Source of the DNA: Podarcis melisellensis | Taxonomy: Eukaryota | Strand: one strand, 5' to 3' | NCBI GenBank assembly: GCA_964234715.1 | Contig: OZ174281.1 | Length of the DNA: 64,000 nt | Shown: one piece after another, positions 1-59,600 of the stretch | Layout of the letters: every line of letters starts with the position of its first letter | Numbering within the stretch: the first letter of the stretch is position 1 | The notes under the pieces: model-generated | The model's database searches: none | Told to the model about the DNA's origin: nothing | The model's input: only the letters and a program-made list of their open reading frames with translations | Made by a program: the position numbers and the translations under genes

Positions 1-1319
1 CATCAGTGGATGCTAAGCTGGATCTACAGCCTTCCCGTTAATAGCAATAATAATGAACAAATAATTTAATAATGTTCACAAATGAAGTACACTCCTTCTG
101 GGATCCAGTACTTCCTTAAATCAGTGTTTCCCAACCTTTTTTGGGCAAAGGCACACTTGTTTCATGAAAAAAATCTCGAGGCACACCACCATGCCAGATG
201 GGGAAAGGTCACTTTTTACTTATGTAAAAAAAAATAAAAAAAATAGTAACAGCATAGAAGGTAATGGTTAGGCTAGCATCCCTCTTCCAAATATGCTAGG
301 TTTTTATTTGCAGGGACTGTTCTACATGGGAAAGCATTCAGTTGCTCCGAAGTTTGGGGGGCCGCGGGGGTGGGCGCGCGTCCCAGGAGGCGGAGGCCAG
401 CCCGGGCTGGGAGCCGCGCCGCAGCCCGGGGGCGGTAGGCGGACCGCGGCTCCTAGGATGTGGAAAGGGGACGGCGGCGCAGGGGGAGGAGACCCGCACG
501 GCTAGGGCAGCGCGCAGGGGGAGGGGAGCGGGCCGGAGGCGGGCGAGGGGGGCCGCGATCCCGCGCGCCGCGAACATGGCCCCCTTCCCCGCGGGCCCCG
601 CCGAGCCCCCCGGCTGCCCCCAACAGACAACCAGGCCTGCAAGCTTCCTCTTCTGACATCGCCCAGGCCCCCACGCAGCCCCCCACCAGCAAAACGCCCA
701 GGAGTTTGAAGGGACCCGAGGGCCACGCAGCCAAGGGGTCTAACTCTGCAGGGAAAAGCTTCCTGTCTTTCCTCTGCCCCCTCCCCACTGGAAAGGGATG
801 GTGGCTGCAGGCTCTGCCCCCCCCCTTAACATCTGCAAAATGATTAAGGCTGATACATTGTGTTACAGGATTTTATCTAGGTAACTTCCCTGAGCTGTCA
901 AGTTGAAAGGGTACATTCAGGCATAATATTTGCAACATTTAACAACTTTAAATATGTGCCCCCCCTGTAATTTCCATAACAGTTGGAAGGTCAAAAATAT
1001 AACCTCCTATGACAACTCCTGCAACCCATGAGCTTTCAGACAAAGATCATGCATGGACAAATGTAAAGATCTTTGGAAAGTATTGATCGAAACCACAGTA
1101 ACAAACGAATCAATGTATCTTCAAGGGAAAGAATAAGTAGATCCATTTGCATATATAGCTCTGTAGGCTTAATTATATTCCATTGCTATTTTGTTATTGC
1201 TCGTTTACTCTGCTTCTATTTATTTTTAGTGCGTGTAACCTTTTTATTCCCCCTCCCCCCCCCGCCAATTTAACTCCTTGTAATACTCTCAATAAAATAT
1301 AAGGAAACAAGAAAGGAGA

Positions 1320-1497
1320 TTCCCACAAAACATTAGGAAGGCCTTTCTGGTGGTGAGAGCAGTCAGACAGGGGAAGGGGCTTTTAGGGAGAGGTCGGGGG
1401 GGGGGCATCTGCCAGGGATGCTTTAGCTGTGAGTCCTGAATTGCTGGGGGTTGGACTGGATGACCTTTGGGTTCCTTCCACCTCTATGATTCCATGA
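1320..1497 (+). mobile_element. CR1 LINE 3' remnant inside the hAT element
   Basis: ACATTAGGAAGGCCTTTCTGGTGGTGAGAGCAGTCAGACAG and GGGTTGGACTGGATGACCTTTGGGTTCCTTCCACCTCTATGATTCCATGA resemble the CR1 ORF2 end and tail. Confidence 0.65.
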
Positions 1498-1964
1498 CCT
1501 TTAAGTGAAGTCACCTCCATCTTCCTCTCAGAGCAGATGCCCACAAGCCCTGGGCGGGAAGAGCCAGAGAGAGAGAGAGAGAGAGAGGAGGACATTCCTA
1601 AGAACCGGCAGCTCAGCTCTCGCCTCCCTCCAGGAACCAGAAAAGCCAGTTTAGGGCTCAGATCTTTCCCACAGGCCTTTCTGAGTTCTTCTCCGGGGAC
1701 ACCCCAGGATGGCCAGAGCGTCACAAGAACCGCACCAGACATTCACCAGACCCCAAATCTTTCCCCCTTCCTGGCCTGAGAGGCTGCAAATTCTACCTGC
1801 CTTCCCCCCTCCAGTTGATCAACACACAGAGATGCAGGTGGCCAGGGACCCACCTGTGCACACCTGAGCCTGCAAGGGGCAGCCAAGCCCCCTTCACCGC
1901 CTGCCCCCCCCCGCCAGCCCCCTCTCCCCTCCTCCCTAGGCGGCAGCTCCGCCATGACCACAAA

Positions 1965-2305
1965 CGGCGGCGGCAGCAGCAGCCGCGCGCGGCCCAGGCT
2001 CCCCTCGCCGCCCGCGGGAGCCAAGGCGCGCGACGAGGGAGCCAAGGCGCGCGATAATTTTCTTAAATTATGTCAGCGGCGCCCGGCAGAGCAGCCCTCT
2101 CGGCCACGGCAGCCCGGCTCTCCCAGCCCCCGGGGGCCGCCCTCCTCCCTCGCGCACCCGCAGCGTTCCCGCCCGGGGAGGCGGCGCCCCCAGGAGAGGC
2201 GGCGGCGGCGGCAGCTGCTGCGCGCGGCCCGGGCTCCCCTCGCCGGCCGCGGGAGCCAAGGCGCGCGACGAGGGAGCCAAGGCGCGCGATAATTTTTTTA
2301 ATTAT
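1965..2305 (+). repeat. ~105-bp GC-rich direct repeat (about 1965-2070 and 2200-2305), each copy with an internal GGGAGCCAAGGCGCGCGA doublet
   Basis: Direct comparison of the two stretches. Confidence 0.85.
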
Positions 2306-2401
2306 TGGGGGGCAGAGCCCCCCCAATAAAATTTTTGAGGGGGCTCAGGCCCCCTCAGGCCCCATGGTGTCGGCGCCTATGCGCCCGCCCCGTCGCCGCA
2401 G

Positions 2402-2743
2402 GCTCCTCCCGGCCGAGAGCCAGAGGACGGCGGCGGAGCAGGAGGAGGAGGATCGGGTTTGGCGACAGCTGCTGCGTCCTCTCCAAGCGCGGGGCTGGCC
2501 TCCGCCGCGCCCGATCCTCCGCAGTCGCCGCGCTTCTCGGCGGAGCAGGTCTCGTGCGTGTGCGAGGCGCTGCTGCAGGCGGGCGACCCCGGCCGGCTGG
2601 GCCGCTTCCTGGGCTCGCTGCCGCCTGATGCCGAGGCGCCGTGCCTGGAGGCGCAGGCAGGCGAGAGCCTGGCCAAGGCGCGCGCGCTGCTGGCCTTCCA
2701 GCGTGGCGACTTCGCCGAGCTCTACCGCCTGGTGCAGAGCCGG
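2402..2743 (+). pseudogene. SIX5: Captured 5' fragment of SIX5 (N-terminus and first ~70 aa of the SIX domain; no homeodomain; one frameshift)
   Basis: 2534-2743 reads FSAEQVSCVCEALLQAGDPGRLGRFLGSLPP...KARALLAFQRGDFAELYRLVQSR, matching recalled SIX5 (FSPEQVACVCEALLQAGHAGRLSRFLGALPP...RARALVAFQRGEYAELYRLLESR) better than SIX4. Another frame upstream gives LPAE...AAEQEEEDRVWRQLLRPLQA, like SIX5 LPAE...EEEEEEARQLLQTLQA. Confidence 0.85.
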
Positions 2744-5184
2744 CGATGGGATGTGGGAGGGAGCTCGCTCGCCGCCCCGCGTGTGCCGCCCGACTCGCCC
2801 GCCTCCCTCCCACGGCACACCAGGCAACCTCTCGCGGCACACTAGTGTGCCGCGGAACACCGGTTGGGAAACACTGCCTTAAATCGATATGCTCTTTATA
2901 TCATTCACATGATCAAGCAGAAGGTGATTAAAAAAAACAAAAACCCAACTCAGATTCTGTTCAGGATGAGGGAGAACTGTAGATGTAATGTTTGGAAGTA
3001 GCCAAAGATAGAATTCCTACTTTCTTCAATTCAGGAAACAAAAACTGGATGGTAAGCGCGTGTGTGTGTGTAACAAGTTATGATTTTATCCAACAAGCTG
3101 GCCTCTGCTGGGGGAGGGTATTCAGAGGCTTTGGGAAAGAGAGCAGAGAATTACCAACATGGCCCTTTTTGTAATTTCTCTACACATGCACACGCACACA
3201 CAGTGTTCAGGAAGCTTCATAAATCAATTAACAGCATACTAATGAGAAGCGGGAGAATTTGGACTACCTTCAAAAGTGTAATAGAAACTTAGGCAATAGA
3301 AACTTTTATGCTGTCTTGATCTGCTCTCCACTTGCATTTGTTTATTTGGAAAAAATCCTGGAGCATCCTGTTCTGGAATGATTCTTATCTGTTGTTCTTA
3401 TTTATAGTTTCAGCTGAATGACCTGCAATTGCATCTGTGTTCTTCCAGCTCTGTTTCCCTTTAACTTTGACAGAAAATTGAGTCCCCTGTGTATTTAAAC
3501 AAACAATGGGCTGGTTTTCAGACATCTGATTTCCGAGCGGGTAAAATGAGTTTACGGTCTTTACCTCTTCAATTTCTGTGTGCTTGTGTGGAGCAGGGCA
3601 ACCCAGTGCCACATGCAGAAGCCGGAAGTTTCCGGCAACTAGAGAGAACCATCAGCCTCTCTGTCACGATGAGCCATTATTTCATGCCTGTGCGAGGCAA
3701 ACATTTTCCCACACAAAACTGAATAGTGAAATAACCAAGTTGGAAGAGCTTTAACGGCCTCAGAAATCATCACAAAAAAAGGAAAGAAAGAAAAGAAAGA
3801 AATCATCACTGAGACTTGGATCTCACATATATTTTACCACAGGGTGCTGCCAAAAACAGCATGGTTTGGTAAATTACCCATTTCTCATATTGTAGTCTAA
3901 TACAAAACTCTTACTATGCAGAGTGAAGCTGTCATACAATGAGTTCCCCAACCCCATGAATGCACAACATGATTCCTGCACTCCAGCTTAATAAGTACAT
4001 TAAAATGGCCGCCTCTGAGGAGTGCTGCTTTCTGAGGTCAGCACTGGCCCAGATATTTGAAGCTGCCATTCCTCTCCAGGACTTTGGTAACTGTAGCTCT
4101 GCTACAGCTTCCAATATTTTTTGGGGGAAGTAGCATGCTTTCAAGTGCTTTAAAATGTATGGTGTGTACTCAGCCTTCATTTCCTCAAAAAGGACTGAAT
4201 GTTATGCTTTGTCTTGTATCTGTCGGTCAAAATGCATATTAAAATAAGAGGGGACAAAATGAAGGCAAAGCTTTGTCAAGATGCAGGATCTATTGGCGTA
4301 CATATTTATTTGTAAACAGAATAACTTTGCCATCCAAACCAGCGCTTAAAATGACTTACAACCAAAGACTTAAAAACAACAGTACTAATCTCATAAAAGT
4401 CACAATAAACATAAAAAAAAACTCAAACACATTTTTTTAAATTTTTCAAAAAGGATGATTTTAAACGGTTAAGAACTCCTGCGGCATAAGAACACACGCA
4501 GAATGTTTTAGGAAAATTGGTTTAACTTTGTGTAATGTTGGGCATGCTCCAAAATGAAAGGCAGATCAGAAACCAGGCTCCGGGCTAAACTGGCGGCCGT
4601 CTCTTCATGGAAGGCGCATGTTAAAATAGCTATTTTATTTCCAGCGCTACTGATGAAACGAGATCCTGATCCTGCACTTGCAGGGTTGGGCACGTGGCCA
4701 GAGAAAACTCTCTTTAAAAAAAAGGCGTTCCAAATAGGATGTGTGTCAGATCATCTGCGCTGCAAAGAATGGAATGCAGACCTCCGGGCCTCCTAAAGGA
4801 GCGGCAGGATTAAGTGGACCCACATTGCAAAATGCAGACAAATAAACATCCACAGGAGCCACTCCGGGACTCTGCAACTTGTGACCCACCAAGAAGAATG
4901 AAGTCAGCCGGCTATGTCCGCAGCCTGCCATGTTGCGGCCAGTCCCTCTGGTTTCAAAGTCCCAAGCAGGCACCAAAAGCTGCGCATTTATAGAGAGCCA
5001 TACAGTCACCGGGGAACATATGCAGGAGAGTGGGCTTCCCACTGCCATCTTGTTGGCCACCCTCAGTACAGAATGTAGGGCTAAATGGGCCTTTGGCCTG
5101 ATCCAGCAGGTCTCTTCTTATGTTATGTGCCTATGATGAGACTGGCATCAGTTGCTAGTTTCTAGTTCCTTAATCCTACTTCAC

Positions 5185-5458: not shown

Positions 5459-6030
5459 GCAGTAGAAGGGAGGATATTATTTGTGCTGGGCAAGGATTTC
5501 TATGAGCAGAGAAGAGCCAGCAGGAATGTGTGGGAAGACATTAAAAATTGTCTTCAAAATAATTTTATTATTAGGGAAAAGAAGAAAAACAAACAGAACA
5601 AAAACAAAACAAAACAAAACAACAACAACCAAAAAACCATCCTCCAAGATTAGACCAAAGCCAAACCTGAACTGCTTCCAAAACACTATGAAGAGAAAAA
5701 CGTCCAAATTTGTCCATGCTTATCGAGTTTGTCTTGTTTTCTATAAACTGTTCTTTCTTTACTGATAAACCAGCTATTTGCAGTAGCCACTCTTGAGCTG
5801 CTGGAATGTAGTATGGACATTTCCATTCGCTAAAGAGCAACCTCTTAGCAACCAGCAGAGCAGTTTAGGATACAAATACCTTCTGCCTTTGTTAAAAGGC
5901 CCCGTAAAAATGGTACAAAACCTAGCCAGTGCTGAATTACAAAGGTGTCTGTTGGTTTTAAACCTAGTTTGCATCTTGGCAATGGGAAAAAACCACCACC
6001 ATACTACCCTCCTGTTTCTTGTTTCTCATT

Positions 6031-6285
6031 AATAGAATCATAGAGATGGAAGAGACCACAAGGGCCATCGAGTCCAACCCCCTGCCAAGCAGGAAACACC
6101 ATCAGAGCACTCCTGACATATGGCTGTCAAGCCTCTGCTTAAAGACCTCCAAAGAAGGAGACTCCACCACACTCCTTGGCAGTAAATTCCACTGTCGAAC
6201 AGCTCTTACTGTCAGGAAGTTCTTCCTAATGTTTAGGTGGAATCTTCTTTCTTGTAGTTTGGAACCATTGCTCCGTGTCCGCTTC
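6031..6285 (-). mobile_element. CR1 LINE 3' end (part 1, split by an L2 insertion)
   Basis: Minus [55 protein letters not shown] is the CR1 ORF2 C-terminus; tail TCTATGATTCTAT on the minus strand. Confidence 0.92.
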
Positions 6286-7459
6286 ATCGCGCCACTCCTT
6301 GGTGTGTGGAGTGCCTCAGGGTGCGATTCTCTCCCCGATGCTTTTTAACATCTTTATGCGCCCTCTCGCCCAGCTTGTCCGGAGTTTTGGGCTGGGTTGC
6401 CATCAGTATGCCGATAACACCCAACTCTATCTGTTGATGGACGGCCATCCTGACTCGGCCCCAGATACACTGACCAGATGTCTGGAAGCTGTGGCTGGAT
6501 GGTTACGTGGGAGCCGGTTGAAGTTAAATCCTTCGAAGACAGAGGCCCTCTGGCTGGGACAGAGCGATATGGGATTGAGGGGGCAACTCCCATCTCTTGC
6601 GGGGGTGCAATTAGTGCCGGCATCGTCCGTTAAGAGTTTGGGTGTAATCTTTGATACCTCCCTCTCTATGGAGGCGCAGATTACAGCTATAACAAAGGCG
6701 GCATTTTTTCATCTCCGCCAAGCTAAGCAGTTGGCTCCTTATCTCTCTCGCCCTGACCTAGCCACTGTGATCCACGCAACGGTCACCTCCAGACTGGATT
6801 ATTGTAACTCGCTCTACGTGGGGCTGCCCTTGAGACTGACCCTGAAACTCCAGCGGGTGCAGAATGCCGCGGCGAGACTCCTTATGGGGTCTTCGCTGCA
6901 AGATCATATTCATCCGGTACTATACCAGCTGCACTGGCTCCCGGTGGAGTACAGGATCAGGTTTAAGGTGCTGGTTTTAACCTTTAAAGCCCTATACAGC
7001 CTAGGACCCTCGTACCTACGGGACCACCTCTCCTGGTATGTCCCACAGAGAAATTTACGGTCTGCAAATAAAAACATCCTGAAGATCCCAGGCCACAGAG
7101 AGGTTAGGCTGGCCTCAACTAGAGCCAGGGCTTTCTCGGCCACGGCTCCAATCTGGTGGAACTCTCTGTCACAATAGACTAGGGCCCTGCGGGACCTGAC
7201 ATTTTTCCTCAGGGCCTGCAAGACAGAGCTGTTCCACCAGGCCTTTGGTCAGGGCGCAGCCTGACCCCCTCCTCTGGCAATCTGCACAGAATTTTGCTTG
7301 ATGGTTGCCATCAATTTGATTTTAATTTGATTTTAACGAATTTTATAATGAATGTTTTTAGAATGTTGGATTATTTTGATTGTTGTTAGCCGCCCTGAAC
7401 CCAGCTTTGGCTGGGGAGGGCGGGATATAAATAAAATTTATTATTATTAAAATTTATTA
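6286..7459 (+). mobile_element. 5'-truncated young L2-clade LINE (RT C-terminal half and 3' UTR)
   Basis: 300-aa open frame with [53 protein letters not shown] and LHWLPV; ends in AATAAA and a (TTA)n tail. Confidence 0.93.
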
Positions 7460-7736
7460 TTCTCTGGAGCAGCAGAAAACAACCTTTCTCCCTCCTCTAT
7501 GTGACATCCTTTTATATATTTGAACATGGCTATCATATCACCCTTTAACCTCCTCTTCTCCAGGCTAAACATGCCCAGCTCCCTTAGCCGTTCCTCATAA
7601 GGCATCGTTTCCAGGCCTTTGACCATTTTGGTTGCCCTCCTCTGGACACGTTCCAGTTTGTCAGTGTCCTTCTTGAACTGTGGTGCCCAGAACTGGACAC
7701 AGTACTCCAGGTGAGGTCTGACCAGAGCAGAATACA
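7460..7736 (-). mobile_element. CR1 LINE (part 2, 5'-truncated)
   Basis: [43 protein letters not shown]...FSAAPE joins in frame to KRTRSNG of part 1. Confidence 0.92.
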
Positions 7737-9898
7737 GAATACAATAATGTCTCTTAATTATTCCTGATTTTCCCATATATGGATTCTGAGTTCCTATTAT
7801 AGGAAAGGAAGGGTGAATAAGGTAATTAGGATTTAATAGTGTCCAACTTTTTCTTAACAGAAATTGGGACACACATCGGGTCACATGCCCCGCTTTTTTG
7901 GGGGTGAGAATAAGGCATGGGTTGAGAGAGCACAGCACTGGTGCTCTGGGCTTGTCAGAGGGTCGCTCCAGCTAGATTGCTGTATCTTCAGCACTCTGCT
8001 GCGAACCTGCTCACGAGTGCCAGACTGAGAGTCTTTTGGTCCCATGGTGCAAGGACTCACACTTGAGCGCCGGACCAAAAAAATGGGACACCCAGGAATT
8101 GAACAGAAGCTGGGATTGGCTTCTATGATTCTGGGGTGTCCTGCTTAAAACAGGGAAGTTGGTGGGTAAGTGATTTGCGTCCTTCCAGTGTTGAAGGCAG
8201 TATGTCTCTGAATCCCAGTTGCTGGGAGTCACACATGGGGAAAGTGCAGGCTTCTCAGAGGCCATTGCGAGAACAGAATACTGGGCTAGAGAGGCCTTTT
8301 TGTCTGACCCAGCCAGCCTCTTCTTACGGTTATATGATTTTGACTTTTTAAAACATGGTTAGAGTTGGGAGACTCTGAGTCTAGCCTTGGCATGCGGTGT
8401 TTCTCACCCTAGCTAGACAAGAATGGGTTTGTTAGATTGCTTACGTATGCAGTGAGGGGTTATGATCCCCCCCCCCAATGAATGCATACATTGGTGCCCT
8501 CCATTCCGCTTATTTGGAAATCTTGTCAAGCTGGAGCTTGAATGTTAACGGAAATGTTAAAAATAGTCTATTGTTGCTGGGCAACTACAGTGAATATTAA
8601 GTTGTAAACTGAGCTGAACGCAATAATGTCCTGTGGTATGTTTAGCAACTTTTACCCAGTATGATAAGGGCCTATGGATCTAAGGATTATGTGATGCAGC
8701 AAGAAGTAATGGGGGAAAATCAACAAAAATGTCAAGCTTATACATCATCTTAAACATGGAGCCGGTAGTAAAACAACAACAACAACCCTCATTTGTGTGT
8801 ACCCTGAAGAAATTAAAACTACACACCAAGGAAACCCAATTTGTGACTGAATGAATAATAAGTGAGTTCTGAATGTATATAAATGGTGCGAATGAGGCAT
8901 GTTCTCTATTTTGCTTATTCTCCACCTTGTGAGATTTCTCACTTCTGATAACTAAGGAAAAGGGCAAGAAGACTGCAGCCTTGGGCCTGAATGTCTAGAA
9001 TTCCTGCTGAAGTCACTTCTAGTTTTGACTATTTCATCAGATGTTGCTAAACCTATTTCAATCCCACCTTCCAGTGACGAAGGCTGGAAACATTCTTTTT
9101 AAAAAAATCAAAAACCACTGAGATTTCTGAGAACATCGGGTTTTGCACTCCTTGCCAAGTTCCACATGACTTTTGTGCTTGTGTAGAATCGTAGCATGCA
9201 CCCACCACAGCATTGCTAAGGCTACATGCCTTCACTTGTTCAGCAGGTAATATTCTTGAATGTCCACTGTGGGCAGAAGATGGGAAAGACTGCCAACTCA
9301 TTTTGGACCTGAATCAAACTTCCCACTGTATTTATCTAATGAAACTCACATTTTGCAGTTTACACAGCCCTGTGATCTGTTATTACTAAGTTTTATGAGC
9401 TTGTGTGTGGCCAAGCTATTCATGAGACACACAGTACATATTTGGGGAACTATCCTCAGCCTTACATTCCACCACGAGTTGAGTCACTGCAAGGCGCTGA
9501 ACCCGTTCCACAGCCTGGAAAGGATATTTGCAATTAACTGTGTAGCCACCCAGCCCCAGCAGGGTGGTGACTACAGGAACACTTTAACCCTGGCATTAGA
9601 GCATCCTGAGGACATGCACCCATAGGGTTCTGGTTGGGATGGCACAGGGGCACAAGGGGCATTATTTCTATCAAGGGAATCAAAAGCTTAAAACAATAGG
9701 AGGCTAGAAGGATGTAAACATGAATGTGAAATGCAGTTGGTTAAGTGATTCAGCTTTTACTCAATTCTGCCCCAGTCCTATTTGTATAGATGTTACAGAA
9801 AGCTCCAGTAGGCAAGTGGTGTTTATTGCAGAAATGTTGCTTCAACTGATACACACACACTCACTATTTTGATAAAGAAAAGGTGAAGGGGAGCTTTC

Positions 9899-10250
9899 TG
9901 AGCCACTTGGGCTTGCTGATCGGAAGGTCAGTGGTTCAAATCCCTGTGATGGGGTGAGCTCCCGTTGCTCTGCCCCAGCTCCTGCCAACCTAGCAGTTCG
10001 AAAGCACACCAGTGCAAGTAGATAAATAGGTACCGCTGCGGCGGGAAGGTAAACGGTGTTTCTGTGTGTTCTGGCTTCCGTCACAGTGTTTCATTGTGCC
10101 AGAAGCGGTTTAGTCATGGCCACATGACCCAGAAAGCTGTCTGTGGACAAACACTGGCTTCCTTGGCCTGAAAGCGAGATGAGCACCACAACCCCATAGT
10201 CACCTTTGACTGGACTTAACCATCTAGGGGTCCTTTACCTTTTACCTTTT
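9899..10250 (+). mobile_element. Sauria SINE
   Basis: GGGGTGAGCTCCCGTTGCTC, GTGCAAGTAGATAAATAGGTACCGCT and a (TTTACC)n-type tail. Confidence 0.9.
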
Positions 10251-11135
10251 TTTTAAGATCCTGACAAATCATTCTACTGTCCCTACTTTATCATGGGCTG
10301 AGGCTGCAATCCAAAAAAGCAGATGAGAATATCTTCCAGGCTGAAACTGAGTACTTGTTTCCAGTTCCTTATTCCCATAAAAGTTCAAAACTGGACTGAA
10401 TGGGCAATCTGAATAAAGAACTGGAGTTGATACATATGTGTCCCTGGGCTGCAAAATGAGCTTCCTTGACTGAGAAACAGTTTCCTTCAAGGTCCACAAG
10501 AATTCTCTCCAATCCAAACAGCTAGGCTTGGCGTGTTTGTTGTTTCACAATGCTCTTGACCATTGCAAAGAAGGAACTGAGGGGTGGGGTGCAAATTCTA
10601 AACTAAGCTTTGGGCTACCAAATATAATACCCACCTCCAGAAAACTCCTCACGTCAGCTGGCTCAGTGGACTCACACCTCCTATCAAAACCGAATTTCAA
10701 GATACATGAGGATTTCCTGGGCAAACTGTTTTGCTGTGCTGGCTGGTGTGGGTTGTCTGCCTGCTTGTGGGGTAAAAAGGTTGAATTGTGCAGAAATGTT
10801 GACGAGGAGTGTGCTTGTTGATAGCCCATGTCTCTGTAGTCAAGCTACAACAGATAGAAGGTCAACATAACACTGAGTCGCCAAGCCATAGATAAGCCTC
10901 CTGTTGACCACGACTGACACCCCATATTTCCACATTGTGAAAATGAAGGAGATAATAGTACAGCAAACACTGCTTTGACTCCCTGCATGCAGTGATAAGG
11001 CCAGGAACGCAGGTCAAAGCTGCCCACCAGGCCTGACTCATCTCCTGTGCAGGGAAGTGTTGTGTGCAAGGCACATAAAGCAACAATAAGGCAAAGCCTG
11101 TCTGTTCAGGCTCCATTATGCACTGAGTTACAGTA

Positions 11136-11565
11136 CAGTGGTACCTCGGGTTACAGACGCTTCAGGTTACAGACTTCGCTAACCCAGAAATACAGTGGTA
11201 CCTTGGGTTAAGTACTTAATTCGTTCCAGAGGTCTGTTCTTAACCTGAAACTGTTCTTAACCTGAAGCACCACTTTAGCTAATGGGGCCTCCTCCTGCTG
11301 CTGCACCACTGGAGCACGATTTCTGTTCTTGTCCTGAAGCAAAGTTCTTAACCTGAGGTACTATTTCTGGGTTAGCGGAGTCTGTAACCTGAAGCGTATG
11401 TAACCCAAGGTACAGTGGTACCTTGGGTTAAGAAATTTACCTCAGGATAAGAACAGAAATTGCATGGCGGCGGCATTAGCTAAAGTGGTACCTCAGGTTA
11501 AGAATGGTTTCAGGTTAAGAACAGACCTCCAGAACCAATTAAGTTCTTAACCCGAGGTACCACTG
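11136..11565. mobile_element. Tc1/mariner-superfamily MITE containing an inverted second copy of itself (11193-11413)
   Basis: TA|CAGTGGTACCTCGGGTTA ... TAACCCGAGGTACCACTG|TA; the internal segment is the reverse complement of the family copies at 28553 and 35976. Confidence 0.88.
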
Positions 11566-12762
11566 TATTGGATTTAGTCCAATTTTATTGTAAGCTTATT
11601 TCACTGTACTTCCCAATTCCTAGAATTTCTTTTACTGTACTTTCCAATTCCTAGAATCCTCTGTAAAGGATTCCTCACAATGCTTCTCCAGGGCATGATG
11701 GCCCTTGGTGAGTTGTGAGACCTGCCCACGATACAGCTTTTCCCAAGGCATCGTGGGAAATTTAAATGGCAGCTCTCAGATTCAACTGATCAGAGTCTTC
11801 CTTCTGTTGCCTGACAAGCCTGATGAGGTTGGGAACTGATGCTGAACAGCCAGAACCCAAATAAAGGAAGGTTTATATGGTATTAAACATTAAATAAAAT
11901 AATGTCAAATGTCCTAAAGGTTAAGAATAAGGGCCTAGCGCTTTGTGAGTAATCACACTGCCTCATTTGTACTCACTGGGCAAAATACTGTGAGCAAGTT
12001 TTGGCGCAACAAAAAAGCCAAGAGACAAAAGTTTTCTTTTTGTTTTCTAAATGAAAACTGAAAATTCACAGAGGGTGGACTGAGCTACGGGACCGACCCC
12101 CCATGGGCCTCCAAGTGTTTACAGTCCAGAGTTTAGTCCTGTCCCTAACACAAGAGGGAAAATTGATAAAAATTAAGTTGTTTATTTAAAGGAAGTAAAC
12201 ATCAACTTGTCCATTTTTTCACCCACCAGTGCCTAACATGGACGTGCTGAATATCTACATCTTGCTAGAGCAACTCCATTTCTATTATTCCCAGTCCTGG
12301 CAATGCCATGAGGAATGGCTCATTGCTTGCGCTTTGCTTCCTGCTGTGCTGTCTTCCTTTAGCAAGCCCTTTCCTCAATGACTTGCGATTAGTTTGAGAA
12401 ATCAGGGGTGTTTTACAAAACCAGGGCACTCTTGATGGGCTATCGATTGAGGACAAGCATGCCTGATAGTCTACTCAATGGGGATGAAAGAGAAAGAGGA
12501 TCCGGACATAGGAAATTCTGGGTGGCCTTGTTTGCGTCTGGGTACTTAGAAAGATAGCTAGAAATTGTCCCTGCATAATTAAATCTTTTGTCCCTTCCTC
12601 CACCAATCAATTTCCCAATGAGAACAAATCCTCCACAGCTGTCACAGCAGCGACTTCCTAGATTCTTGAAGGAGAATCGCTCAATATCGTATTTAAATAG
12701 TAAAACAAATGACATGAGAAGCAGCCTATAGCAGCTCTGTATGTTGGGAAATGCTCTCCTTA

Positions 12763-12836
12763 CAGAATCATAGAATTGCAGAGTTGGAAGGGGTCCTCGG
12801 GGTCATCTAGTCCAACCTCCTGCAATGCAGGAATCT
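12763..12836 (-). mobile_element. CR1-type tail of a SINE/LINE
   Basis: AGAATCATAGAATTGCAGAGTTGGAAGGGGTCCTCGGGGTCATCTAGTCCAACC; reverse complement of the tail at about 15800-15848. Confidence 0.7.
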
Positions 12837-13769
12837 CAGCTTGAGCCCAGCCAGGCTGTACAACCTCAAATGCCAAGTGGAGGCTGAATAGTTGACTTCA
12901 TATAGTACATATGGAGGTTTCCCCCTGCAAAGCGGGGCACTTGCCCCTAGGAGCAAGCAATCAGAAATTTGAGAGAGGAAAGAGAAGCAATGGTAGCAGT
13001 AAGAGAAAATATTTTTTAAAAATAATTATGTTTATATTCTGCCTTTTGTCGTCAAAGGAACGCAAGGTGGTGTACAGAGTTCTCCTCCCCGTTGTATTCT
13101 CACCACAATCCTGTGAGGTAAGTTAAGCCGAGACTGCATGAGTGGCCCAAGGTCGCCCAGTGACCTTTATTGCTGCCTGTGTTATGCACACTTAGGCTTT
13201 GTTTTACCCTGGAGGGTAGGATTGGATATGTGTGGAATTTACCCATCATTTTTAGCAACAGAGAGAGCCTGGGTGGTGAAGCTACTAGAACAGGTGTGGC
13301 TCGCCTTTTGCAATGCCTTCAGGGCAACCACTGAAGGGTCATGTGCCAATGGTGAGCAGGGCCAGCAGCCAAAACCGGCAGAACAACAGAAGCAAACAAC
13401 AACAACAACTTTATAATTGATATGCTGCCCATCTGACTGTGTTGCCCCGGCCACTCTGGCCGGCTCCCAGCAAAATAGTAAAAACACAATCAAACATTAA
13501 AAACTTCCCTAGTCAGGGCTTCACTATACATGCCCACACCTCCCACTCTCTGTATCCTCCCTCTAAGACAAGCGAGAAACAGTACCAGAACTCAAGGACA
13601 TATTCCAGCCAGGCATGAACACCCAAGGACTGTGTGAAGCAGGGCCGGTGAGAGGGAGAGTCCTGAGGACCAGACAGAAAACACCCACATTTGGCTCTCG
13701 GGCCTGTGATTAGCCACCCCTGAGTTAGAATGTAGAGCAGCATTAGGAGACACATGTTACATTTCAGAT

Positions 13770-14222
13770 GCCATCAGCATGGCCAATGGTGGTTGATGAT
13801 GGTTGCTGTCACTGTTGGCATCCGTCTGTCTTAGGAGACAAAAAGGAGGAGTGCACCTTTGGCTGGAGAGTTACAGCAACTGCTGTGCTGTAGGGACTGA
13901 TACGGGAGAGACATGTTTTGTTGCAGCTGGGGCAGATGAAGGAATCTGGTTGTGCCACTGCAGGTGCACCATGGCCTTTCTTCTCTCTGTGCTCCTCCCA
14001 GTGGTCGTTCCTCCCCAAGTCACTGCTATAGAAGCATGACCCGACTGTCTGTCTCCAGGCACTGCAGCCGGCTCCAGGGCTTCCCACATAGCACGGCTAA
14101 TGTTGCCAGCCTTCATGTCTTGTTTGCAGACATCTTTGCAACGTAGAGTTGGTCTGCCAATGGACCTGGTGCCTGAAGCCAGCTCCCCAAAGAGCAAACC
14201 GTCTTCCATTCTGTGGACATGT
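13770..14222 (-). mobile_element. RTE-clade LINE 3' fragment, degenerate
   Basis: MEDG..LLFGELASGTRSIGRPTLRCKDVCKQDMK and, after a frameshift, FICPSCNKTCLSRI (RTE ORF C-terminus with zinc-finger-like end). Confidence 0.8.
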
Positions 14223-14239
14223 CAACATGATGGAAGTTG

Positions 14240-14450
14240 AAACAAACTAAAAAAATTCCTTCCAGTAGCACCTTAGAGACCAACTAAGTTTGTTATTGGT
14301 ATGAGCTTTTGTGTGCATGCACACTTCTTCAGATGCACAAGAAAGCTCATACCAATAACAAACTTAGTTGGTCTCTAAGGTGCTACTGGAAGGAATTTTT
14401 TTAGTTTGTTTTGACTACAGCAGACCAACACAGCTCTACCTGTAACTAGA
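14240..14450. mobile_element. Penelope-like element remnant with inverted terminal duplication
   Basis: Perfect 70-bp inverted repeat (14240-14309 / 14342-14411); 13-bp flanking direct repeat ATGATGGAAGTTG (14227-14239, 14451-14463); TTAGTTGGTCTCTAAGGTGCTAC motif typical of reptile PLE termini. Confidence 0.8.
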
Positions 14451-15707
14451 ATGATGGAAGTTGTAATCTAGCAACATCCAGAGATAAATGGGCAATCCAG
14501 GTTCACAGAGTTGTTGTAATGATGGGGGCATTGCGTGAACATTGCGTGAACATTGCCATGAGCTCCTGAGAGAAAAGGTTTAAAAGCATTTAAAAAATAA
14601 TCAAACCCTGCTTAGCTGTGGTGAGGCCGGCTCTCAACCTAACCAATCTCACAGGGTTGTTATCAGGCTAAAACAGGGCTCTTTTGTCCTTGGAGAAAGG
14701 GTGAGATACAACTGTGGCAAATATTTTCAGATGCTGAGAGCTGGGGATATATTAAGCTGTAAAAAGTTAATTCATGCAATCTCTGTTAATGTAGTTAATC
14801 GGATAATGCACACAATCTCTCCCTGATGTTTACAGTACTCTTCCAAATCTCACCGAAGATCTATCCTGTAATGAGCTTGTCTGGGTTTCTCATCAAACTT
14901 TATTATGAGTAGACACATGTACAATGCACCCTTTCCTTGGTTTGATTTTTAATCATGTGAGCTACTTGCAAGAGAATCCCCTTGGCTTACAGCCAATTGT
15001 GAAAAGCAGCCCTTGTTAAACCAGTCCTGCAGACTGGAGACTGTCTTTGGTATTCAACTGGGCAGAAAGAGTTCTTAGTTAACTGGAGTGAAACCAGATA
15101 TTTTGGAGAAGGAAGTGATAAAGTGGGGAACTTTGGAACAGAAGGTCACATTCTAGTCTCCTATTAGAAACCAGAACAACCTGTCACATATTTTCTTAAT
15201 TATCATACAGTGGAAATATTAACAGGCTAGTTCGGCAAAGAGGCACTCTTATTCTTTCTAAAATGAATGTTCAAGTCAATGATAGCTCTCGCTCATGTTC
15301 AGATCCAGTGGAGAGCTGCTTGGCAGTAGGTTCTGAGCTGACAAAGGGAAGTACTTTCCCCACACACTAAAAGTTATGAGGGTGCCTCCAGACTGTCAGT
15401 ATTTTGCAAGAGGGATTCAAGCACATTCGACAACTTTAGGATTTAATGTTTAAAGTGGATTAAAGTGCTCTGTTGCCTTAGCACAAAAATGAACCCACTT
15501 TTTTTTTAAAGACTTTTTTTGCAGTTTGGAAAGTGATAGGGGAAAGTGTGGGATGAATGACTGGTTAATGGGGAGATGTGTAAACACCCTGCAAGCATTT
15601 CAGGATATGAAATTCAATTTTAGTTCTGTAATTATATTTCAGCTTTCAAATTGCTTTGCAGTTGGAGTCTTTTAGAAGTTTCTGCTTGCAAGCTTCCCAC
15701 AGGCAGG

Positions 15708-15848
15708 TGTGGGTAGCTCAGTCGGTAGAACACAAGGCTCTTAGCCTCAGGGTTGCGAGTTTGAGCCCCACGTCGGGCAAAAGCTTTCTGCATTTCACGG
15801 AGTTGGGCTAGATAACCCTTCCAAGTCTACAATTCTGTGATTCTATGA
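15708..15848 (+). mobile_element. tRNA-Lys-derived SINE with CR1-like tail
   Basis: A box TAGCTCAGTCGGTAGA, CTCTTAGCCTCAGGGTTGCGAGTTTGAGCCCCACGTCGGGC (tRNA-Lys-like), tail ACAATTCTGTGATTCTATGA. Confidence 0.8.
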
Positions 15849-16117
15849 CTCATTGTCATAGAACCACCCTGTAAACAAGTCAGAATGCATGCTCAATAAA
15901 TACTAGACATAGGCTGTGTATATACACCCATTTACTCTGAATGCATTGCACTCCCATCACTGGTTTGAGAAGTGGTGTATAAATAACATTAGCTGCAATC
16001 CATAGCTATAATGTTATTTCTTATGCAGTCCTGCATGCCCACCCTCAAAAAAACTAGCTTTGATCTGAATTGTTTTAAAAGTTGTACACTGTCTTGATAT
16101 CTTTTGATAAAGGGTGG

Positions 16118-16118
<1 letters not shown>

Positions 16119-16167
<49 letters not shown>
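16119..16167. repeat. (AAT)n microsatellite, probably a LINE tail
   Basis: About 16 AAT units. Confidence 0.95.
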
Positions 16168-16171
<4 letters not shown>

Positions 16172-16285
16172 CAACTCTGGAATTCCCTCCCACAGGAAGT
16201 AGTGATGGTCATAAACTTGGATGGCTTTAAAAGGCTTATCTTCCATCTATCTGAATGGGTCATGTGGATGTTGTGTGCAGGGCAT

Positions 16286-16629
16286 AAAGGTAAAGGGACC
16301 CCTGACCATTAGGTCCAGTCGTGGCCGACTCTGGGGTTGCGGCGCTCATCTCGCTTTACTGGCTGAGGGAGCCGGCGTAGAGCTTCCGGGTCATGTGGCC
16401 AGCAGGACTAAGCCACTTCTGGCGAACCAGAGCAGCACACAGAAACGCCGTTTACCTTCCCACCGGAGGGGTACCTATTTATCTACTTGCACTTTGACGT
16501 GCTTTTGAACTGCCAGGTTGGCAGGAGCTGGGACCGAGCAACGGGAGCTCACCCTGTCGCAGGGATTCGAACCGCCGACCTTCTGATCGGCAAGCCCTAG
16601 GCTCTGTGGTTTAACCCACAGCGCCACCC
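16286..16629 (-). mobile_element. Sauria SINE, near full length
   Basis: AAAGGTAAAGGGACCCCTGACC...TACCTATTTATCTACTTGCAC...GGGATTCGAACCGCCGACC...CACAGCGCCACC. Confidence 0.92.

Positions 16630-31764: not shown

Positions 31765-31806
<42 letters not shown>
31765..31806. repeat. (CT)n microsatellite
   Basis: About 21 CT units. Confidence 0.95.
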
Positions 31807-31809
<3 letters not shown>

Positions 31810-39399: not shown

Positions 39400-40650
39400 C
39401 GTGGAGGAGCTTGCAGCCCTAGTCCTTGAGACTCCGGGTGTGCGAGCGTCAGGTGAGCTTAATCCCCTGGCAGAGCAGCGCGGCTGCTACCTCTCAGGTG
39501 TCGGCGAGGTAAAGGAACCGGGAGCAGCTTCCGCCCTCCAAGGCGCGGGGATAAAAATGCCGCCGCCTCCTGCCCCTTTCTCCCCCCACATCCACGAGAC
39601 TTCCCTCCTCCCCCGCCGGACGGACACCGGGTTCAACCGCTCGGCGGCCCCGCCTCGTCTGTGATCTCAGCAGGGGGAGAAAAGAGAGGCGGAAAGAAGC
39701 CTCCTCCCGGCCGGGCAAAGCCCAACCCGAGCCCTGCCTGGGGCCTGGTAGCTTCGCTTCGCCTTGCGCCTCCCCCGCCTGCCCGCCCGCCTCCCTCACA
39801 CGCTCCGCTTTCTTTTTCCTCCTCACAGGCACTTCCTGCGCGGGGCCGGGCCGGGCCCAGTCGGGTGGAGAGGGGGAGACTGCTGCTGCTGCCGCCTCGG
39901 CGGAGTTAAAAAGGTATTGGGGAAGGGAAGGGACAGGCGGGCGTCCGTTGACGTTCTGAGGGCCTCTGCCGTGAGGGCTCGAGGTGTTGTCGGCAGTTGG
40001 TCGCGGGGGGGGGGCGGAGGGGTCCCCGAAGAAGCCGCCCGTCAGGGAAGCGGGCGGGCGGGAGTGGCTCCCCGAGCGAACTGGCGCCTGAAGGTGCGGG
40101 GGGGGGGGAGGCTTCCACCGAGGGGTCCCTCCCAGGCCGCCGCTCACGGGCGCTCCGAGGGGATTAGTCGGCGGCGGCCGTTGCTGCTGCTGCTCCTCGC
40201 ATTGCTGGAGGGTGAAGTCATCGTGGCCATTGTCTCCCCTCAGCTCCCCGGCTGGGCCGCCAGAGGGGGGAGGCCAGCAACCAGCCGTGGGGCCCGCCTT
40301 GTTCTCCGAAGCCGCCGGGTAAATTCTCTTTCCCACCCCACCCCCGGGGGGGGGGGCAATACTGGACAGACTTTGAAACCCTCATCCACTCCGCGGGCAA
40401 AGTCCGAGGAGAAACTCGGGGTGGGGTTCGGGGGGTGGAAACTCCATATTCGATCGCTTCCACACCCCAATAAGTTATTTTATTTTTTTCTGAGGGAAGG
40501 ACTTTGGAAAAACGCCCTCTCCTTTCTCTCATACAGCTTCGGAGCGTCTCTATTTGCACTTCCTTCTTGTAAAACAAAGGTACATTCTCCGCCTTGGGGT
40601 GGGGTGGGGGGCGGAATCTGTGAAAAAAATAGTAATTTTTATTAAAGGCC
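39400..40650 (+). promoter_or_regulatory. RNF19A: CpG island / main promoter of RNF19A
   Basis: Sharp GC/CpG-rich block in AT-rich flanks with GC boxes (GCCCCGCC, CCCGCC) and an ETS core CACTTCCTG; the nearest island upstream of the first coding exon. Confidence 0.85.
39829..39913 (+). other. RNF19A: Probable 5'-UTR exon of RNF19A
   Basis: Pyrimidine tract and CAG acceptor (TTTCTTTTTCCTCCTCACAG, ending 39828); donor AAG|GTATTG after 39913. A further donor CAG|GTGAGC lies after 39452. Confidence 0.55.
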
Positions 40651-55555: not shown

Positions 55556-55737
55556 CCCTAAACTGAATCTTCTGTTGCATTCCAACTGTCAATATGCTTC
55601 CAGAAGTCCATTGCTTAGTCCTACATCAGGAAAGAAGCCTTATCATCATTCATTGCAGGGGGTTGGACTAGCTGACCCTTGGGGTCCCTTCCAACACTTA
55701 AGATTCTATGATCTTGATGTTCTATTATGGTCACAGC

Positions 55738-57526: not shown

Positions 57527-57727
57527 AATTGCTGTGAAAGAGTTTCCTGGAATTGTATGTCGTGAAGAATTTTGTATGTGAAGAAGACAGACCAGACCAT
57601 GTATAACATGACTTAGCCCCCTCCCCAACATGACCTCTAAGTTTGCTGCTTCTCGATAGGCATTTTTTCCTTAAAGTGATCAGTGTTGTACACATGCTTT
57701 GATCCATTTCTGATGAATGTTTTAGCC
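57527..57727 (+). other. RNF19A: 5'-UTR portion of the first coding exon of RNF19A
   Basis: Branch-like GCTAAT (57491), pyrimidine tract and TTGTAG| acceptor ending 57526; in-frame TGA at 57677. Confidence 0.7.
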
Positions 57728-58308
57728 ATGAGTTTACATCGGCAAATGGGATCTGATAGAGACTTGCAATCTTCTGCCTCCTCTGTAAGCTTGCCTTCAA
57801 TTAAAAAGGCACCAAAGAAAAGAAGGATTTCACTGGGGTCTCTCTTTCGAAGAAAAAGGGATACAAAACGCAAGTCCAGAGATATAAACGGAGGTGTGGA
57901 TGGCATTGCAAGTATTGAAAGCATACATTCAGAAATGTGTATGGACAAGAACTCTATTTTCTCTGCCTATATGTCTTCTGACAATGGAACAACCATCATC
58001 AGCAAACAGAGCGGAGACTTCATGGAGTGTCCCTTGTGCCTTTTGCGACACTCCAAGGAGAGGTTTCCGGAAATAATGACTTGTCACCATAGATCTTGTG
58101 TGGATTGCTTACGTCAGTATCTTCGGATAGAAATCTCTGAGAGCAGAGTTAATATCAGCTGTCCAGAGTGCTCTGAGCGATTCAATCCCCATGATATTCG
58201 ATTGATATTAAATGATGACATATTGATGGAAAAATATGAAGAATTTATGCTTAGAAGATGGCTTGTGGCAGACCCTGATTGTAGGTGGTGTCCTGCTCCT
58301 GATTGTGG
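57728..58308 (+). CDS. RNF19A: RNF19A (Dorfin) first coding exon: basic N-terminus, RING1, start of IBR
   Basis: [24 protein letters not shown]...[49 protein letters not shown]...[13 protein letters not shown]; start gccATG at 57728 (alternative in-frame ATG at 57713); donor GG|GTAAGT, phase 2. Confidence 0.96.
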
Positions 58309-59600
58309 GTAAGTTATTATCTCCACTCCCCTTCCTACCCATTCTAATGAAGCACATGGATCTTGTCGCCATTCTGAAATATATTATTCAGCTCATTAAA
58401 TTGCTCTAATTGTCTACTAATTTGTAACTATTTTAACATTTGAAGTTTTGTGCCTCCCTCATATTGCTCAGGTTGTGCTAAGTAGTCCTTATTGTTTCAT
58501 GGCATAGATGAAACAAAGTAAAAGAACAGACAGGCAGATATATTCTGGTAAACACTGTTATTTCACACTGTAGAGTGTTTAAAGGAGTGACTTTAGTTCC
58601 TTTAAAATAAAATAGAAATATTTTAATACACTTTGAAAAGAAACCTAGCAGTTTCTTGAGTGTAAATTGTGAAAGTTTTTATAAAATAAAGAAGTTAACT
58701 TTGTAGTTACACATCCTGGCAATGGCAGTTTTAATACCCCAAATATTGGCGGCCAGTAGAAATTCAGTATAAGAGAGCATAAACCAGTTTGTTGCTGCTG
58801 CTTGATGCTAGAATACTTTTTCCTAAGCTGCAAATGTTTTAATATTCAAGGAAACACATTTGATTGTCATCATTAAGCCAGAACAAGTGTACCCTTTGTC
58901 ATATTCTTCCCTTTCCAAGCCCACTACTTGGGAGGAGCAAGAGGGTACTTTTCATTCTAATCACTTGTTTTGCTTGGTAAAGCTCCTCTCACCACTCTCC
59001 CTGCCTTCGGTTGCCTTGTTCGGTTCCTAGCTCTGGGTTCTCAAACTTCAAGCAATCTCCTAACTGCTGTTATTCTGCTGCTATCATATAAACACCTATC
59101 TCTGACTTATTTTGTCATAGCTGTGATAACTTGGCCAAATATGAAATGTGATTGGAACAAACAAAACTTCATTAGTATAGTAAAAGCTGAATATAAAGGG
59201 TTTTTATGGGATTTGCTTTAATAATGGTGTTCATTTATTTTATGTTTTAACATGTGCTTATACCTCTATTCCTAACTGTATCCTATCCAACCTACTCTAC
59301 CCCTTACTCCTCAGCACCCACACCAGCTACTCTCACTTCCTCCAAAACCCAACTGTCATTCCCCAGACACATACCTATTCTGTCATAAGCTACCCTGTCA
59401 TTCAGCACACAACACACACAAACATTCCATCCCTCTTTCACTCCCCCCTGAACTTGCCTTACCTTAAATCATACAAACCTTCCTACACAAAATTTACACA
59501 ACAGTATGCCAACCAGCACAAATAAGATACAATGACAAATACCACGTCCTCTGCTGATTTTTAGATGATTTTAATCCTTAGCAAAACAATAACTTCAGCT

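Follow-up and report, generated by a model that had tools for sequence, protein, structure and literature searches.

A Pack-hAT transposon of Podarcis wall lizards that carries the 5' end of SIX5

Introduction

In plants there is ample documentation of gene capture by cut-and-paste transposons, and the cases known from animals are mostly single-copy and immobile. In 100 animal genomes, one survey described 370 elements with terminal inverted repeats (TIR) and captured host sequence (Pack-TIRs), 208 of which are hAT elements (Pack-hATs); only four of the 370 are multicopy, three in frog and one in alligator, and no lizard is named in the text (Tan et al. 2021, Nat Commun; PMC8277862). Multicopy, recently mobile Pack-hATs are a rare sight in vertebrates. 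Here we describe a further Pack-hAT in the sense of that survey, which is multicopy and insertion-polymorphic. It occupies positions 122-2876 of a 64,000-nucleotide stretch of the wall lizard Podarcis melisellensis (GenBank assembly GCA_964234715.1, contig OZ174281.1; hereafter the window, which contains no N), and its interior matches the 5' end of the host gene SIX5.

Among the described elements, Pack-hAT-N8_XT of Xenopus tropicalis, which carries the 5' untranslated region (5'UTR) of CAPSL, is likewise a non-autonomous hAT with the 5' end of a gene as cargo and an identifiable parent, and the multicopy Pack-hATs of Tan et al. likewise have distinct flanks and lack a transposase (PMC8277862). 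What sets the wall lizard element apart from them is its lacertid host, an empty allele that speaks for recent mobility, and a second round of internal replacement whose product multiplied in its turn. MULEs, for their part, have long TIRs and target-site duplications (TSD) of 9-11 bp; the element described here, with a TIR of 15 bp and a TSD of 8 bp, belongs to a different superfamily and does not fall among the Pack-MULEs. It is nevertheless like rice Pack-MULEs and plant Pack-TYPE elements in combining capture between TIRs with amplification of GC-rich gene fragments, and Pack-MULE cargo is often a mosaic drawn from several loci (PMC8903248, PMC5861414).

A non-autonomous hAT element with SIX5 cargo

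The element is bounded by exact 15-nt TIRs (CAGTGTTTCCCAACC at the left end) and bracketed by an exact 8-bp TSD, CCTTAAAT (Table 1), just as an earlier note, made by a model from the letters of this DNA alone, had read them. The 15-mer has just two matches in the window even with up to two mismatches permitted, and in a blind scan for TIRs with a TSD the element is the sole clean case. From the base composition of the window, exact 15-nt inverted pairs no more than 8 kb apart that also have an exact 8-nt duplication next to them would be expected by chance about 1e-5 times per window. None of the open reading frames (ORF) of 122-2876 encodes a transposase, and their sole Pfam match is SIX1_SD, so the earlier claim that no transposase is present stands.

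The earlier note had assigned the element to hAT by its nnnTAnnn TSD. This is upheld by the fit of CCTTAAAT to the hAT consensus NYYTARRN and by the TIR itself, and the 8-bp TSD, the short CAG...-type TIR and the evidence for mobility presented below place the element in the hAT superfamily as a non-autonomous member. NYYTARRN is also the TSD consensus of hAT-N3_AC and SPIN_NA1_AC of Anolis carolinensis (Novick et al. 2010, PMC3014272), whose TIRs, CAGTGGTTCCCAACCT and CAGTGKTTCTCAACCT, each agree with that of the wall lizard element at 15 of 16 positions in a comparison confined to TIR and TSD strings; unlike the SIX5 element, neither is described as gene-carrying. Further afield, the TIR of the miniature inverted-repeat transposable element (MITE) hAT2_NA of Manduca, CAGTGTTTCCCAAC, is identical over 14 nt when the TIR strings are compared, and the hAT2_NA MITEs of Bombyx, Rhodnius and Manduca have 8-bp TSDs with TA at +4/+5 (PMC3845634). 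Relatedness to these insect elements, or horizontal transfer, may be taken as a lead from this 14-nt identity. Of the 12 occurrences of GGCACAC or its complement in the window, six fall within about 160 bp of the two ends of the element, a pattern that resembles the subterminal repeats to which a transposase may bind.

Between the hAT ends lie two pieces of SIX5, separated by a filler of other DNA. The earlier note had recognized a single SIX5-like segment, ending about 130 bp from the right TIR. That segment is confirmed, with SIX5 homology stopping at 2744, 132 bp from the right end; the cargo is nevertheless in two pieces, of which the one at the left had been missed. The presence of this second piece near the left end marks SIX5 as what appears to be the primary cargo, later split by the 1.77-kb filler. 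The SIX5 locus of Podarcis raffonei (L001; 22 kb, gene at 6001-16412) was the reference for comparison of the cargo. The left piece corresponds to -237 to +39 around the SIX5 start codon and is 98.5% identical to L001 with gaps excluded; the right piece is 96.2% identical with two indels (12 and 3 nt) excluded, and the boundaries of homology in L001 are sharp (5764, 6039, 6139 and 6517). The left piece reads MAPFPAGPAEPPG, where Podarcis SIX5 has MASFPAGPAEPPG. In the right piece, an ORF at 2459-2845 matches positions 1-70 of the 113 of Pfam SIX1_SD (E = 8.8e-15), its peptide over the SD stretch is the same as in Podarcis SIX5 when aligned with the Podarcis and Zootoca proteins, and an exhaustive protein search leads to reptile SIX5 proteins. 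By these comparisons the cargo is that of Podarcis SIX5. A separate intact SIX5, which the earlier note had anticipated, does exist: full-length proteins are found in P. muralis, P. raffonei and Zootoca (P0176, P0183; locus L001), P0176 being a normal P. muralis SIX5 of 927 residues. The element thus has a host-derived interior whose parent copy resides at a separate locus, as is characteristic of Pack-TIRs.

An allele without the insertion

Four public runs were aligned to positions 1-3200 of the window at 90% likeness. The X1 contigs provide a baseline, with a depth of 110-127 in the flanks (about 118 for unique flank), and they follow the window closely outside the element: the right-flank contig is identical to it over the 310 nt of 2891-3200, and 1-113 is covered without listed differences. 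One X1 contig joins 113 directly to 2877, skipping 2763 nt, with nine letters at the joint that fit either side. These nine letters are a single CCTTAAAT and a C that by chance follows both copies of the TSD. The joint represents a chromosome without the insertion, and it supplies the empty site with one target sequence that had been proposed as a check in the earlier note.

Either the species is polymorphic at this site or the assembled animal is heterozygous for it, and in both cases the insertion is evidently recent. Those main predictions of the earlier note that lent themselves to testing had the proposed outcome; its idea that an already chimeric element had inserted here recently is in line with this empty allele and with the occurrence of the same breakpoint elsewhere, in P. 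muralis, as described below.

Several copies in more than one wall lizard

The cargo is present in several copies, not one. Contigs over the cargo have 3.9-13.2 times the depth of the unique flank, a figure used here only to tell several copies from one (individual contigs are listed in Table 1). The ends of the element are far more abundant still, at thousands of copies in the public reads: summed depth reaches 5.9e5 in the bin 108-214 and 7.6e5 in the bin 2783-2889, compared with the unique flank at about 118. Much of the structure of the family can be read from where its members part from the window. Most hAT relatives depart from it after 192; relatives in a lower-copy subfamily do so after 341, as loose ends in X4 and X15 show, and at 2741, by the loose ends in X4, family relatives come in from DNA unlike that of the window. 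In short MITE forms, 141-144 is joined to 2792-2811. Forms that lack 1174-1315, or about 235 nt at 2072-2306 (joint 2071 to 2307), coexist with the window form in one run.

In X4, which carries another species label, 34 contigs have G at 2559, a V-to-G change that is also found in the P. muralis protein P0001; the parent gene has V. Nearly all SIX5-like contigs in X4 carry this change, which is absent from the parent gene, implying a large excess of Pack copies over the gene in that run and a family common to at least two Podarcis labels.

P0001 (UniProt A0A670I980) is a P. muralis entry under the name 'Homeobox protein SIX1 N-terminal SD domain-containing protein', with 95% identity to the window ORF. 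It has the same 3' SIX5/hAT breakpoint (...LVQSR then RWDVGGSS), continues through the translated hAT 3' end, and departs from the window precisely at the last base of the TIR. Read as a whole, it runs through SIX5 5'UTR DNA in the wrong frame, part of exon 1, the hAT 3' end and then flanking DNA, and its SIX5 part is contiguous, without the filler. Because P. muralis also has the normal 927-residue SIX5, P0001 is most likely an annotation artefact, a gene model placed on another copy of the element. A protein search with P0001 found no further gene models on other copies. The multi-copy SIX5-carrying family envisaged in the earlier note is thus supported, by the indirect evidence of contig depth, of coexisting structural variants and of the same junction in a different flank in P0001.

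A mosaic filler

The interior had been called a mosaic, and it resolves into the two SIX5 pieces and a 1766-bp filler with CR1-like and high-copy sub-repeats. The filler also includes an AT-rich stretch; a (GA)n microsatellite lies within it at 1560-1587, and another is found at 31765-31807 of the window. Two of the sub-repeats, 877-943 and 2307-2380, occur at hundreds to thousands of times the unique depth and have sharp loose ends at their borders. The latter contains two GC-rich hairpins, and an Rfam search of 1-3200 found no RNA family; the high-copy sub-repeats are not recognizable as short interspersed nuclear elements (SINE) of the tRNA or 7SL type. The CR1-like piece at 1307-1501 has relatives in the window at 6032-6255, 12768-12841 and 55652-55715, all CR1-like 3' fragments.

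As to the source of the filler, its ORFs have no Pfam match and the 22 kb of L001 match only its CR1-like bits. A 945-nt contig in X15 matches 613-906 and then runs into unlike DNA to the left of 613, from which a separate donor locus for the filler probably exists. SIX5 and filler overlap by GC at their junction (613-614).

Table 1. Features of the SIX5-carrying element in the window, with contig depths relative to unique flank
Feature	Position	Strand	Remarks
TSD, left copy, 8 bp, CCTTAAAT	114-121	.	direct reading; fits NYYTARRN
TSD, right copy, 8 bp, CCTTAAAT	2877-2884	.	direct reading
Left TIR, CAGTGTTTCCCAACC	122-136	+	15-nt exact inverted match to 2862-2876
Right TIR	2862-2876	-	exact reverse complement of 122-136
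hAT 5' backbone	122-341	+	122-192 very high-copy terminal part; 193-341 lower-copy subfamily part
GGCACAC motifs, 5' backbone	150 and 180		motif search
hAT 3' backbone	2741-2876	+	GGCACAC/GTGTGCC motifs at 2781, 2814, 2836, 2845
SIX5 cargo, piece 1: 237 bp upstream of ATG (5'UTR, CpG island) and first 13 codons; ATG at 576	340-614	+	L001:5764-6039
SIX5 cargo, piece 2: residues ~47 to ~170, exon 1; SD positions 1-70 of 113	2381-2744	+	L001:6139-6517
Mosaic filler, 1766 bp	615-2380	.	replaces 99 bp of SIX5 (L001:6040-6138)
High-copy sub-repeats in filler	877-943; 1307-1501 (CR1-like); 2307-2380		read depth / repeat copies in window
142-nt segment absent from some copies	1174-1315		variant joint 1173 to 1316
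Second CpG-island-like block, observed/expected about 1	about 1900-2300		inside filler
Repeated 102-nt block (direct repeat)	1965-2066 and 2200-2301		inside filler
Contig depth, element ends	terminal ~70 nt left, ~90 nt right		about 5000-6400x unique flank
Contig depth, spanning SIX5/filler junction 614/615, no differences	585-758		depth 1040; 8.8x unique flank
Contig depth	992-1173		13.2x unique flank
Contig depth	1144-1345		7.5x unique flank
Contig depth	1596-1908		5.0x unique flank
Contig depth	2473-2625		9.7x unique flank

Origin of the chimeric element

We consider it highly probable that the element is a non-autonomous Pack-hAT from a very abundant Podarcis MITE family, whose interior was replaced by the 5' end of SIX5 and which was later mobilised in trans and multiplied. 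Under this model, a copy of about 750-860 bp of the SIX5 5' end (5'UTR/CpG island, start codon and the first ~170 codons) would have taken the place of the hAT interior, through template switching at microhomologies in the course of repair or replication. The junctions are of the right kind. SIX5 homology spans 340 to 2744, and the hAT backbone diverges after 341 and before 2741, so the two overlap by AG (340-341) and by CGGC (2741-2744); microhomology of 2-4 nt fits template switching in double-strand-break repair or replication, a route that has been put forward for the Pack-TIRs of animals (PMC8277862). Read-through from an adjoining element is an unlikely source of the cargo, because no member of the hAT family is present in the 22-kb P. 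raffonei SIX5 locus. As to the place of SIX5 beside DMPK, which the earlier note gives as its normal one, the 6-kb upstream flank of the gene in L001 holds only ORFs resembling long interspersed nuclear elements (LINE).

A second event of this sort in the lineage of the present copy may then have put 1766 bp of other DNA in the place of 99 bp of SIX5, the filler probably being gained in like manner in a later round, and this variant would also have multiplied. Mobilization of the chimera would be the work of a hAT transposase supplied in trans, recognizing its TIR of 15 bp and its subterminal GGCACAC repeats, and the present copy would be a recent insertion, about 36 kb upstream of what is probably the RNF19A promoter.

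Several observations weigh against this account, or at least against parts of it. Microhomologies of 2-4 nt are the whole of the evidence for template switching. No autonomous hAT partner turned up, although no DNA search of the genome for one was made. For the filled allele, no contig or read independent of the assembly spans from flank to TIR, and X1 lacks the private letters of this copy (1996, 2467 and 2523-2524), so that the filled allele is attested by the assembly alone; that X1 has no filled-allele contigs counts for little against that allele, because contigs are interrupted within the high-copy ends and rare variants are lost from them. Contig depth is a rough proxy and not a copy number. 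P0001 is a gene model, not DNA, and its cargo begins at least 105 nt further upstream (5659 in L001, as against 5764), which means that the left boundary is not common to the two copies. Given this longer reach and the missing filler in P0001, the window lineage may be a rearranged, shortened derivative, or else its left junction may have arisen separately.

Alternative explanations

Could the captured sequence have been put to use? The SIX5 CpG island might act as a new promoter near RNF19A, or a truncated SD peptide or a regulatory RNA might be expressed. The CpG observed/expected ratio is still about 1 (~1.0 over 300-600 and 1900-2880), and all five differences from the parent in the SD-coding stretch fall at third codon positions and leave the peptide unchanged, as co-option would have it. 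However, the native frame stops after 26 codons from the ATG at 576, and the SD piece has no in-frame ATG; with only SD positions 1-70 of 113, no homeodomain and a broken frame, the cargo does not amount to a functional SIX5 paralogue. The CpG sites themselves also speak against co-option. Half of the mismatches to the parent gene (9 of 18) are at parental CpG sites, and seven of these nine are C-to-T or G-to-A changes, which point to germline methylation. The earlier description of the CpGs as largely undecayed accordingly holds for the observed/expected ratio but misses this decay at the parental sites.

Selective constraint on the SD piece was considered and rejected, as most of its five synonymous differences are CpG transitions at third positions, and replacements occur in other copies; P0001 has V-to-G and R-to-W changes. 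Nor does expression favour co-option. In the single true RNA run, 97% of the aligned reads continue into unlike sequence and so derive from other members of the family; reads on 2462-2782 are few and have the letters of the parent gene or ones like them. A contig run labelled 'RNA?' has an ends-to-interior depth ratio like that of a DNA run and is indistinguishable from low-coverage DNA. The insertion, moreover, is not fixed. We regard co-option as improbable, and this copy is most likely non-functional.

Less probable again is a one-off event of gap filling independent of transposition, in which a hAT already resident at this site took up SIX5 DNA and has stayed there ever since. Tan et al. 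found that the majority of animal Pack-TIRs exist as single copies and owe their origin to gap filling (PMC8277862), and the junction microhomology is compatible with that process too. But the empty allele lacks the whole element with its ends, not merely the cargo; P0001 has the same breakpoint in another flank; and cargo and junction contigs lie at 4-13 times the unique depth, with structural variants coexisting in one run. Each of these is at odds with an element that stayed where it was filled. The least likely of all is an artefact or coincidence, be it misassembly, for which the lack of independent read-level support for the two filled junctions leaves some room, or two independent MITEs of the same family flanking an ordinary SIX5 segmental duplicate, conceivable given the extreme abundance of the family ends: neither would give the exact removal of 122-2884 that leaves one CCTTAAAT in the empty allele, an exact 8-bp duplication brackets the unit, no other family member lies in the 64 kb, and the same cargo/hAT junction occurs in P. 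muralis.

Genomic setting

The Pack-hAT lies about 36 kb upstream of 39401-40300, the only CpG island in the window outside the element, and about 55 kb upstream of a coding exon (57683-58312, +) in which a RING and an IBR domain begin. Island and exon are probably the promoter and the first coding exon of an RBR E3 ligase. The earlier note had named the locus RNF19A; the exon is consistent with this, while the identity is unproven and depends on that exon alone. Elsewhere in the window, a LINE reverse-transcriptase ORF (Pfam RVT_1) is found at 6275-7177 (+). A short element at 11193-11431 has the inverted ends GTACCTTGGGTTA and TAACCCAAGGTAC, with the 20-mer CAGTGGTACCTTGGGTTAAG as a direct repeat on either side; this is probably a MITE from a different family, or else a partial tandem.

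Significance

The SIX5 element combines in one case an identified parent gene, sharp microhomology junctions, a second round of replacement, several copies and an empty allele, and it offers a natural series for studying how capture occurs and by what course chimeras become common in a vertebrate. On the practical side, A0A670I980 in UniProt/Ensembl is most likely an annotation artefact on a transposon copy. The interest of the finding lies in the presence, in an amniote, of an element with several copies and a site that is still polymorphic, which may belong to a genome-wide burst.

Such a burst is a wider and more tentative idea, possible without being the likelier outcome, namely that the wall lizard hAT family is active now or was very recently, and repeatedly captures and amplifies the CpG-island 5' ends of genes. 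If so, it would be a vertebrate counterpart of the rice Pack-MULE burst, with the SIX5 element one chimera among many, of which some would still be polymorphic. Near other genes there would then be dozens of scattered orphan promoters and first exons, and gene capture by DNA transposons could be watched as it happens in an amniote.

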